64,000 nucleotides of DNA, taken from the NCBI GenBank assembly GCA_028826165.1, contig JAPDFW010000078.1, forward strand, positions 248,001 through 312,000, written 5' to 3'. A program made the translations under genes and the position numbers. The notes below the pieces were generated by a model. The model did no database searches and was not told the origin of the DNA. It was given only the letters and a program-made list of their open reading frames with translations. This stretch comes from Anaeramoeba ignava BMAN (lineage: Eukaryota > Protista > Anaeramoebae). Shown here in pieces: positions 4,773 through 10,750 of the stretch; the first letter of the stretch is position 1, and every line of letters begins with the position of its first letter.

Positions 4773-7453
<2,681 letters not shown>

Positions 7454-7588
7454 TTTAATTAAATTAATTTTTAAAAGATTTTAATAAAATTTTTTAAGAA
7501 TTTATTATTTATTTTTTTAAAAAAAAGAAATGAAAAAAAATGAAAATTTATTTTTTATTTTTTATTTTTTTTTTTTTATTTTTCTCAA

Positions 7589-10500
7589 ATGTCAATTGAT
7601 AAAGCTTTTGTTACTGGACTTAAAAAAGCAGATGAAGAAATTGTTAAAGCATTTTGTGAAAGTGGAGCTGTTAATTTTGTTGATGTAAAATTTAAAATTA
7701 AAATTAAAAAACAAACAAAAATTAATTTATAAAATTATTTAGGAAGTAAAATTGTTTAAAATCAAATTGTTTTTAATTCAAACTTTTATTCATTTTTTTT
7801 ATAAAAAAAAGGATGTAAAAAATAAATAATTATTTCTTTTTAAAATTTGTTCTTTTTTATAAATAAATTCTTTATAAATTTAGAATAATACACCATTACA
7901 TTATGCTGTTATAAATAAAGCTGGTCCAGATATTGTTGGTTTATTAATTTCTTATGGAGCAAATGTTAATGCACAAAATGTAATTAATTTATTAAGAAAT
8001 TTATTTAGAAATTTATTTAAAAAATTCCATTTATTTTCTAGAAAGTAAATTTTAATTTTAATTTTAATTTTAATTTTAATTTTAATTTTAATTTTAATTT
8101 GAATTTTTATTTTTAATTTTAAATTGAATTTTAAATTTTAATTTTAATTTTAAATTTAAATTTTTATTTTAATTTTAATTTTAATTTTAATTTTAATTTT
8201 AATTTTAATTTTAATTTTAAATTTTAATTTTAATTTAAATTTTAATTTTAATTTTAATTTGAATTTTAAATTTTAATTTTAATTTTAATTTTAATTTTAA
8301 ATTTTAATTTTAATTTTAATTTTAATTTTAATTTTAATTTTAATTTAAATTTTTATTTTTAATTTTTTATTTTAATTTAAATTTTAATTTTGAATTTTAA
8401 TTTGAATTTTTATTTTAATTTAGATGGTAAATTTTTTTGTTATTAGTTTTAAAATAATTCTTTCATTATTGTGTGCTTTTTTATTATAAATTTAGTTGGA
8501 TACTCCTCTTCATTATGCATGTTGGATTCGTGCAGGATCTGTTGTTATTAAATCTTTATTATTTTCAGGTGCAGATATTACATTAAAAAATGTAAATAAT
8601 TTTTGCTTTTTTTAATTTCAAAAAAAAGTGGAATAAAAAATTATTTTTTGTTTTTGGTTTGTTTTTTTAGAAAGTAAAAAAAAATAATTATTTGAATAGA
8701 AATTGGAAAAAAAAAAAATAATAATAATAATAAAATAATCAAATTTTTTTAAATGATTTAGCATGTAAAATCAAATCAAAAATTAAATATAAAATTAAAT
8801 ATTAAATTTAATATAAAATTTAATATAAAATTAAATATAAAATTTAATATAAAATTTAATATAAAATTAAATATAAAATTAAATATAAAATTTAATCAAA
8901 AATTTAATCAAAAATTAAATATAAAATCAAATATAAAATTAAATATAAAATTAAATATAATATTTAATATAAAATTAAATATAATATTTAATATAAAATT
9001 AAATATAAAATTTAATATAATATTAAATATAAAATTTAATATAATATTAAATATAAAATTAAATATAATATTAAATATAATATTAAATATAAAATTATTT
9101 ATAAAATTAAATATAATATTAAATATAATATTAAATATAAAATTATTTATAAAATTAAATATTAAATCAAATATTAAATCAAATATAAAATTAAATATAT
9201 AAAATTAAATATAAAATTAAATATAATATTAAATATAGTATTTAATATAAAATCAAATATAAAATTTAATATAAAATTAAATATAAAATTTAATCAAAAA
9301 TTAAATATAAAATTAAATATAAAATTAAATATAAAATTTAATCAAAAATTAAATATAAAATTAAATATAATATCAAATATAAAATTAAATATAAAATCAA
9401 ATATAATATTTAATATAAAATTTAATATAATATTAAATATAATATTTAATATAAAATTAAATATAAAAATTAAATATAATATTAAATATAAAATTTAATA
9501 TAAAATTAAATATAAAATTATTTATAAAATTAAATATTAAATATAAAATTAAATATAAAATTAAATATAAAATTAAATATAATATTAAATATAAAATTAA
9601 ATATAAAATTAAATATAATATTAAATATAAAATTTAATATAAAATTTAATATAAAATTAAATCAAAAATTTAATCAAAAATTTAATCAAAAATTAAATAT
9701 AAAAATTAAATATAAAATTAAATATTAAATCAAATATAAAATCAAATATAAAATTTAATATAAAATTAAATATAAAATTAAATATAAAATTAAATATAAA
9801 ATCAAATATAAAATTAAATATAAAATTAAATATAAAATTAAATATAATATTAAATATAGTATTTAATATAAAATTTAATATAAAATTAAATATAAAATTA
9901 AATATAAAATTAAATATTAAATCAAATATAAAATTTAATATAAAAATATAAAATTTAATATAAAATTTAATATAAAAATATAAAATTTAATATAAAATTT
10001 AATATAAAATTTAATATAAAAATATAAAATTAAATGGAAAAAAAGAATGAAACACCAGTTGAAGCTGCAATTGATGGAGAAACAAAAGATATGATGAAAC
10101 TCTTTTCATTATTAATTCAAGATATGATAATTTTATACGAAAGTGGAGAAATGATAGATTTGACAATTCAATGTAAAGGAGGAACAGTAGAAGCACATAA
10201 ATTAGTAATAGAAATGAGAGGAAAAAACTGTTTTACTTTGAATGAATTCTTAGAATTTTGTATGGAATATTCACAAGAAGAAGTGAAACAATTACTAAGA
10301 TTTTTATACACAGGAATTCATTCATTTTCAACAAAAATTTTAACAGAATTCCAACAGAAATTAAAATTCACAAAAATTGGAAAGAAAAGTCTTCATCAAG
10401 ATTTTTTGAGATTATATAATGATGAAGAAACAAAAGATTTCTCGATAATTGTTGGTGATTATCAAATCAAAACACATAAACTTATTTTATTTGCTCGAAG

Positions 10501-10750
10501 TGAAATTTACCGAGCAATGTTTTCTTTTGTTAATGATCCTTCTCCTTTTGTTCATGATTATAGTGGAAAATCAAAGGAAGCTGTTTCGGCTTTTATTCGT
10601 TTTTTATACACTGATTCTTTGGAAAAAGATCTTTCTCTTCAAGTTGTTGATGAGCTTGAAGATGCTGCTGATTATTACCAACTTAGATCTAATGTTTTGT
10701 TTCAACATCAACTCAGAAAACTAAGAGAAAAATTTGATCAAGAAAAATAA
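7589..10750 (+). CDS. Ankyrin-repeat + tandem BTB/POZ protein with six 3-nt microexons
   Basis: Exons 7589-7684, 7743-7745, 7812-7814, 7884-7979, 8042-8044, 8424-8426, 8496-8591, 8671-8673, 8762-8764, 10046-10750; all introns GT-AG and phase 0. TPLHYA and GANVNA/GADIT ankyrin motifs; two BTBs (VEAHKLVI...LRFLYTG; KTHKLILFARS...FIRFLYTD). Confidence 0.85.
8770..10030. repeat. Intronic 12-bp satellite AAATATAAAATT
   Basis: Fills intron 8765-10045 of the ankyrin-BTB gene. Confidence 0.9.

Follow-up and report, generated by a model that had tools for sequence, protein, structure and literature searches.

Putative single-codon exons between the ankyrin-repeat exons of an Anaeramoeba ignava Ank-BTB gene

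How is an ankyrin repeat completed when the exon that encodes it is two residues short? The question is raised by an Ank-BTB gene on the + strand of a 64,000-nucleotide (nt) stretch of the Anaeramoeba ignava BMAN genome (assembly GCA_028826165.1, contig JAPDFW010000078.1, positions 248,001 to 312,000), which is referred to here in its full length as the window. The ankyrin region of this gene begins with three exons of 96 nt, and exactly two AG-NNN-GTAAA units come after each of them. In these units a canonical AG acceptor and a GT donor directly abut a triplet; all six read (T/A)AG-NNN-GTAAA. This arrangement had been described from the letters of the DNA alone (hereafter the sequence-only reading), and all of its coordinates were found to be exact. 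All junctions between exons and units are in phase 0, and splicing the six units in keeps the frame without a stop, adding the residues E, D, K, M, K and H.

Are these triplets spliced into the mRNA, and if so always or only as options? Our analysis indicates that the six units are very probably genuine 3-nt spliceosomal exons which are apparently included constitutively. For the window gene itself we infer inclusion from evidence across the gene family. Exons of 3 nt are already known in animals and plants; what is new here is that the transcript-derived proteins of two sister genes carry the residues of single-codon exons.

Residues of single-codon exons in transcripts of paralogues

Single-codon exons are included in the mRNA of two paralogues. 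The transcript open reading frames (ORFs) used were TransDecoder ORFs on assembled transcripts of A. ignava (EukProt EP01156), and the A. ignava proteins sharing 90% clusters with these ORFs gave two pairs of transcript and genome model. In the first pair, P0152 (transcript, 792 amino acids (aa)) is 100% identical to P0124 (genome model with ankyrin repeats and a kinase, 771 aa) except for 21 extra residues, which are distributed over 11 insertions, all at ankyrin junctions; ten hold two residues each and one a single residue. P0152 was compared with the DNA of locus L043 (G000:C72:367016-371185, - strand), which covers the last four of its 11 junctions and part of a fifth, and with them 9 of the 21 extra residues. 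At this locus the residues K-I correspond to units AG-AAA-GT and AG-ATT-GT, I-Y to ATT and TAT, and L-N to TTG and AAT, each in the right order between 96-nt exons, and the D of Q-D (GAT) and the I of E-I (ATT) also find their units in the right order. The second pair consists of P0154 (transcript) and P0098 (genome model), an Ank-BTB-BTB paralogue of the window gene at locus L029. At the junction of the BTB exon with the last ankyrin exon, inside a stretch matching L029 at 100%, P0154 carries K-T, which corresponds to AG-AAA-GT at 6813 and AG-ACA-GT at 6873 of the locus. In both pairs together, 10 of 11 testable transcript-only residues match genomic AG-NNN-GT triplets, in order.

Four observations weigh against this interpretation. 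First, the Gln of Q-D at the last ankyrin junction of P0152 has no canonical AG-NNN-GT unit in L043. Its site is a sub-intron of 171 nt (locus bases 2786-2956) upstream of the GAT unit. This sub-intron is roughly double the typical length, and a 21-mer with CAACAA is duplicated in it, but AG-CAA-GT is absent. An assembly error or a non-canonical splice site is possible, so either the rule is imperfect or the assembly is wrong there. Second, residues 1-102 of P0154 do not map to L029, and only its 3' part was therefore used. This N-terminus resembles another paralogue, and the transcript is probably a chimeric assembly joined at the conserved TPLHYAC stretch. Third, the 90% cluster of the annotated window protein (P0001, NCBI KAJ5072989.1) has no transcript ORF, and a search for runs with the last exon of the gene listed none of RNA. 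Fourth, AlphaFold2 in single-sequence mode, applied to the transcript-verified pair, predicts an ankyrin solenoid both with and without the extra residues. For P0152, which has them, the mean predicted local distance difference test score (pLDDT) was 82.7 with 100 residues at or above 90, and for P0124, which lacks them, it was 79.0 with 11 such residues; in each case one of five models was confident. Comparing structures with and without the residues had been suggested in the sequence-only reading, and the outcome is weakly in favour: confidence is higher with the residues, but the array folds both ways and structure prediction thus does not demand them.

Recurrence of the units and signs of translation

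The introns of the window gene comprise 2169 bases, of which 2.4% are G. A first-order Markov simulation fitted on these introns gave a mean of 0.026 AGNNNGTAAA and a maximum of 2 in 5000 runs, against the 6 observed, and the earlier statement that six such sites are unlikely by chance is borne out. No further AG-NNN-GT was found in the 2169 intron bases, the sole extra match (at 7921) lying inside exon 2, and six of the 8 matches to the unit motif on the + strand of the whole window belong to this gene.

The arrangement recurs throughout the genome. More than 150 exons of A. ignava are paralogous to the tandem-BTB exon, and in the flanks of 39 BTB paralogues ankyrin repeats were again found as single 96-nt exons with two AG-NNN-GTA units between them. 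A hidden Markov model was built from these 96-nt exons, and the number of residues missing at each junction was predicted from the repeat register. Of the 71 ankyrin junctions at which the model called for two residues, 55 had exactly two units, in agreement with the pairing that had been expected between the ankyrin exons of paralogues; most of the other 16 junctions involve a missed exon or loose motif matches. When the distance between acceptor and donor was varied (AG-Nx-GTAA) in 134 kb of local sequence, N3 was counted 107 times, N6 31 times and each of N0-N2, N4, N5 and N7-N12 8-22 times, an enrichment of N3 of 5- to 13-fold over the latter group and of ~3.5-fold over N6. Genome-wide (42.8 Mb assembly), TAG-Nx-GTAAA was matched 2597 times with N3, 645 times with N2 and 361 times with N4. 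The N2 and N4 spacings and codon permutations served as controls for these counts, while a reversed-pattern control was uninformative, coding sequence being rich in the reversed words. The excess of strict-motif matches is roughly 2100, and since the strict motif TAG-N3-GTAAA captures 44% of the accepted units in the local set, a rough extrapolation gives ~4800 units in the genome.

These counts bear on the idea that the motifs are ratchet points of recursive splicing or have arisen by chance in AT-rich DNA. Recursive sites do indeed show a 3' splice-site motif next to a 5' one within an intron, but such sites carry no bases between AG and GT, and N0 is not enriched (8 against 107 for N3); chance, for its part, would supply ~0.03 units where 6 are observed. 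We regard this explanation as scarcely credible.

If the triplets are exons, they should read as codons, and they do so in several respects. Among the 112 triplets at concordant junctions not one is a stop codon, compared with ~10 expected from intron composition (P = 2e-5); GAT is 15-fold over-represented, ATA is absent and TTA is nearly absent. Genome-wide, TAG-TAA/TGA-GTAAA was matched 40 times, always in isolation, as against 209 matches to TAG-AAT-GTAAA. In a pair, the residue from the first unit is mostly K, N or D, with Lys the commonest, and that from the second mostly D or Y (112 family triplets), Asp being the commonest residue at the second position both in units and in contiguous repeats; both positions are hypervariable among paralogues. 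The residue profiles of the units were compared with those of 119 contiguously encoded 34-aa repeats from AT-rich relatives, at the two positions that precede the Thr of TPLH by four and three residues. The correlation with the matching position was r = 0.75 for unit 1 and r = 0.72 for unit 2, and it dropped to 0.16 and 0.06 when the swapped or the exon-start position was used instead. Because stop avoidance and position-specific residue usage are otherwise unexplained, the triplets are taken to be translated. Untranslated decoys were considered as a separate candidate and rejected on the stop-codon avoidance, the residue profiles and the transcript matches at L043.

The repeat register leads to the same positions. 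Exons 2 and 3 of the window gene score 37 and 25.4 bits against the Pfam Ank model (PF00023), both above the gathering cut-off of 21.1, and the whole of P0001 scores 56.7 bits. Residues 2-32 of exon 2 align to positions 3-32 of the 33 in the model; as a 32-aa exon thus covers model positions 3-32 (with one insertion), two model positions are left unfilled at each junction. This register and the paralogue transcripts agree with the sequence-only reading in placing each unit at one hairpin-tip residue, positions 2 and 3 of DxxGxTPLH. Relatives without these introns have repeats of 34 aa (32 + 2), with two residues where the units lie. They include the A. ignava paralogue L009, P0115 (one long exon on contig C94) and the A. 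flamelloides Ank-BTB homologue P0080, whose locus (L042, GCA_027625915.1 JANTQA010000032.1) holds the repeats in exons of 279 and 210 nt and shows neither 3-nt units nor an N3 excess. Judging from this one A. flamelloides gene, the single-codon layout may be specific to the A. ignava lineage; as P0080 encodes the same residues contiguously, it points to lineage-specific gain or loss of introns around single codons. In 150 relatives taken from an exhaustive profile search, a 32-aa period was found almost only in short AT-rich multi-exon models annotated on the A. ignava genome.

The deposited annotation itself supports a different view, in which the units are unused in the window gene, the stretches of 199, 516 and 1454 nt between its exons are each one intron, and the motifs are relics or decoys. 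P0001 has 330 aa, that is 3x32 + 234, so the NCBI model skips all six units and joins the 96-nt exons directly, just as it had been foreseen that gene predictors would miss them, and no transcript was found for the gene. In P0124 and P0098, however, the same pipeline likewise left the units out, although their inclusion is proven there by transcripts. Unused units would moreover have kept six intact AG and GTAAA signals in introns with 2.4% G, none of them enclosing a stop, and would leave repeats of 32 aa, the period almost confined to those annotated A. ignava multi-exon models. We therefore consider this view very unlikely.

Longer groups of units were also seen. At locus L024 (- strand, 5673-6310), one ankyrin junction has four units, TCC, GGT, TTT and GGA (S-G-F-G), after an intron filled with a ~34-nt repeat, so that unit number, and hence loop length, varies between repeats. 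On contig C1, runs of 7-20 TAG-NNN-GTAAA units occur at 409309-413053 (- strand), 942330-942793 and 1057923-1058584; according to the match list they are spaced ~70-80 nt apart, with no room for a 96-nt exon between them, and some repeat one codon (ATT, ATT, ATT, TGG, ATT, ATT). Such runs may be stretches in which every codon has its own exon, or the product of tandem duplication of an 'intron + codon' unit. L024 and the C1 runs together hint that loops may possibly grow codon by codon through tandem duplication of such a unit.

Constitutive or optional inclusion

If the units are real, it must still be asked whether they are always used. The sequence-only reading had suggested a variable use, in which skipping or shuffling of the 3-nt cassettes could tune the binding surface, and several observations lend this some appeal. 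The unit positions are hypervariable among paralogues and correspond to positions randomised in designed binders of the ankyrin type; the frame is kept whichever unit is skipped; the P0152 junction with one extra residue could reflect a skip or a single-unit junction; and AlphaFold2 still folds the array without the extra residues. Nevertheless, the sole transcript ORF that runs over an ankyrin array, P0152, has extra residues at 11 of 11 junctions, in relatives with contiguous coding the repeat length is fixed at 34 aa, and the splice sites of the units are stronger, not weaker, than those of ordinary exons, as expected of constitutive exons. Real units that are alternatively included, so that combinations of skipping and inclusion diversify the ankyrin binding surface, thus appear unlikely, and the proposed tuning found no support. 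It is likewise doubtful that single-codon exons act as independent cassettes by which one Ank-BTB gene would make many hairpin-tip variants feeding ubiquitin ligases. Positions 2 and 3 of the DxxGxTPLH frame are the hairpin-tip positions randomised in libraries of designed ankyrin repeat proteins (DARPins). The analogy is one of position only, for which the Pfam register speaks, and does not imply DARPin-style diversification within one gene.

The splice sites of the units are closer to consensus than those of the neighbouring 96-nt exons. An A at donor position +4 was found in 83% of units and 57% of exon donors (p = 0.0009), and a T at acceptor position -3 in 75% of units and 54% of 96-nt exons (p = 0.008). 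Strong flanking sites are expected, since exons this small cannot carry enhancers. The sub-introns of the family have a median length of ~70 nt and a minimum of 50, so that each looks like a complete short intron.

Constitutive inclusion could work in the following way. Each ankyrin repeat would be assembled from a 96-nt exon (32 residues) and two single-codon exons into a repeat of 34 residues, the two codons at each junction supplying the hairpin-tip residues, which in the window gene would be E-D, K-M and K-H. A. ignava introns are ~92% A+T (PMC11550330), and in such short introns GT and AG would be rare and hence informative, so each intron of ~70 nt may be recognised as a unit (intron definition). 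A 3-nt exon leaves no room for its acceptor and donor to be bound at the same time, so that its flanking introns would be removed one after the other; the codon would first be fused to a neighbouring exon, after which the remaining flanking intron would be removed.

Known microexons and the window gene

Microexons of 3-27 nt are known in animals, where they depend on SRRM3/4, and single 3-nt exons occur in cytohesin-1 and RPS24 (PMC7821500, PMC6314551, PMC11162997). The A. ignava units resemble them in being tiny and frame-preserving, in altering surface or interaction residues and in being often missed by aligners and annotators. Animal microexons, however, are cassettes under regulation: a gene usually has a single one, long introns surround it, and its inclusion depends on a tissue-specific factor. 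In A. ignava an ankyrin repeat has about two and the genome probably thousands, with flanking introns of ~70 nt and apparently constitutive use. In plants, 2398 small microexons of 1-15 nt have been recorded across ten species; like the A. ignava units they lie within domains and are pervasively misannotated, and the plant ones are constitutive and conserved (PMC8831610). Compared with plants, roughly 2100 excess strict-motif matches are found here in a single 43-Mb genome, tied to one position of a repeat family. The micro-exon genes (MEGs) of Schistosoma have coding arrays of symmetric, frame-preserving microexons of 6-36 nt; their products are secreted proteins and their splicing is alternative. 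The units of A. ignava differ from MEG exons in being single codons placed between one-repeat exons of intracellular Ank-BTB proteins.

In our literature search no paper linking Anaeramoeba with microexons was found, and the genome paper (PMC11550330) is silent on microexons and on ankyrin. If thousands of constitutive 3-nt exons are indeed used in one organism, this would be among the densest uses of minimal exons known to us, and would offer a natural system for studying how the spliceosome handles an exon too short for both splice-site complexes. The public A. ignava proteome would then be wrong at each such junction, showing 32-aa repeats without their hairpin-tip residues, a flaw that bears on any structural or comparative work with hundreds of genes.

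The last exon of the window gene is 100% identical to P0001. It matches Pfam BTB (PF00651) with E = 2e-16 and 60.5 bits (cut-off 20.5), in two stretches when scanned alone; in the whole of P0001 the match is one stretch (219-311). Two BTB domains had earlier been described in this region of the gene. A word-indexed protein search with the BTB exon had two hits only, the annotated protein and a BTB protein of A. flamelloides; the locus of the latter (L041) lacks an ankyrin array, shows no N3 excess and is uninformative either way. The nearest solved BTB domains are those of myoneurin, ZBTB17 and SPOP, with weak E-values (SPOP E ~2e-3). From its BTB domains the protein may be a Cullin-3 substrate adaptor. 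Mammalian ABTB1/BPOZ has the same order, N-terminal ankyrin repeats followed by BTB, and is mentioned as a lead only. The NCBI names of P0001 and its paralogues look like transferred misnomers, such as 'pep-cterm sorting domain-containing protein', 'cyclin-dependent kinase inhibitor 2c' and 'ada2a-containing complex component 3'.

Table 1. Exons, putative single-codon exons and introns of the Ank-BTB gene (positions in the window)
Feature	Position	Strand	Basis or remark
Exon 1, 96 nt: start codon and N-terminal capping half-repeat ending VNFVD	7589..7684	+	identical to first 32 residues of P0001
Intron, 58 nt, GTAAAA...TTTAG	7685..7742	+	length within usual range of family sub-introns
Putative 3-nt microexon GAA (Glu), first hairpin-tip residue	7743..7745	+	flanks tag-GAA-gtaaaa; analogy with transcript-verified units of paralogues
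Intron, 66 nt	7746..7811	+	sequence
Putative 3-nt microexon GAT (Asp), second hairpin-tip residue	7812..7814	+	flanks aag-GAT-gtaaaa
Intron, 69 nt	7815..7883	+	sequence
Exon 2, 96 nt: one ankyrin repeat minus two residues	7884..7979	+	Pfam Ank E = 3e-9
Intron, 62 nt	7980..8041	+	sequence
Putative 3-nt microexon AAA (Lys)	8042..8044	+	flanks tag-AAA-gtaaat
Intron, 379 nt, swollen by (AATTTT)n array	8045..8423	+	Tandem Repeats Finder
Putative 3-nt microexon ATG (Met)	8424..8426	+	flanks tag-ATG-gtaaat
Intron, 69 nt	8427..8495	+	sequence
Exon 3, 96 nt: second ankyrin repeat	8496..8591	+	Pfam Ank E = 1.6e-5, model positions 3-32
Intron, 79 nt	8592..8670	+	sequence
Putative 3-nt microexon AAA (Lys)	8671..8673	+	flanks tag-AAA-gtaaaa
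Intron, 88 nt	8674..8761	+	sequence
Putative 3-nt microexon CAT (His)	8762..8764	+	flanks tag-CAT-gtaaaa
Intron, 1281 nt, nearly all 12-nt tandem repeat	8765..10045	+	Tandem Repeats Finder
Last exon: C-terminal ankyrin cap (NETPV...), then BTB region; stop TAA 10748-10750	10046..10750	+	Pfam BTB

Two of the nine sub-introns (Table 1) are long, and only because they are filled by tandem repeats: the (AATTTT)n array occupies 8048-8421 (period 6, 61 copies) and the 12-nt repeat 8766-10021 (period 12, 105 copies), as delimited by Tandem Repeats Finder. Each of these expansions is confined to one sub-intron, and the adjoining units are intact. A local example of ordinary intron size is given by the neighbouring region at 6900-7460 on the - strand of the window, where the three-exon start of an actin-related-protein-like gene, with introns of ~90 nt (GTAAAA...AG), was recognised by eye.

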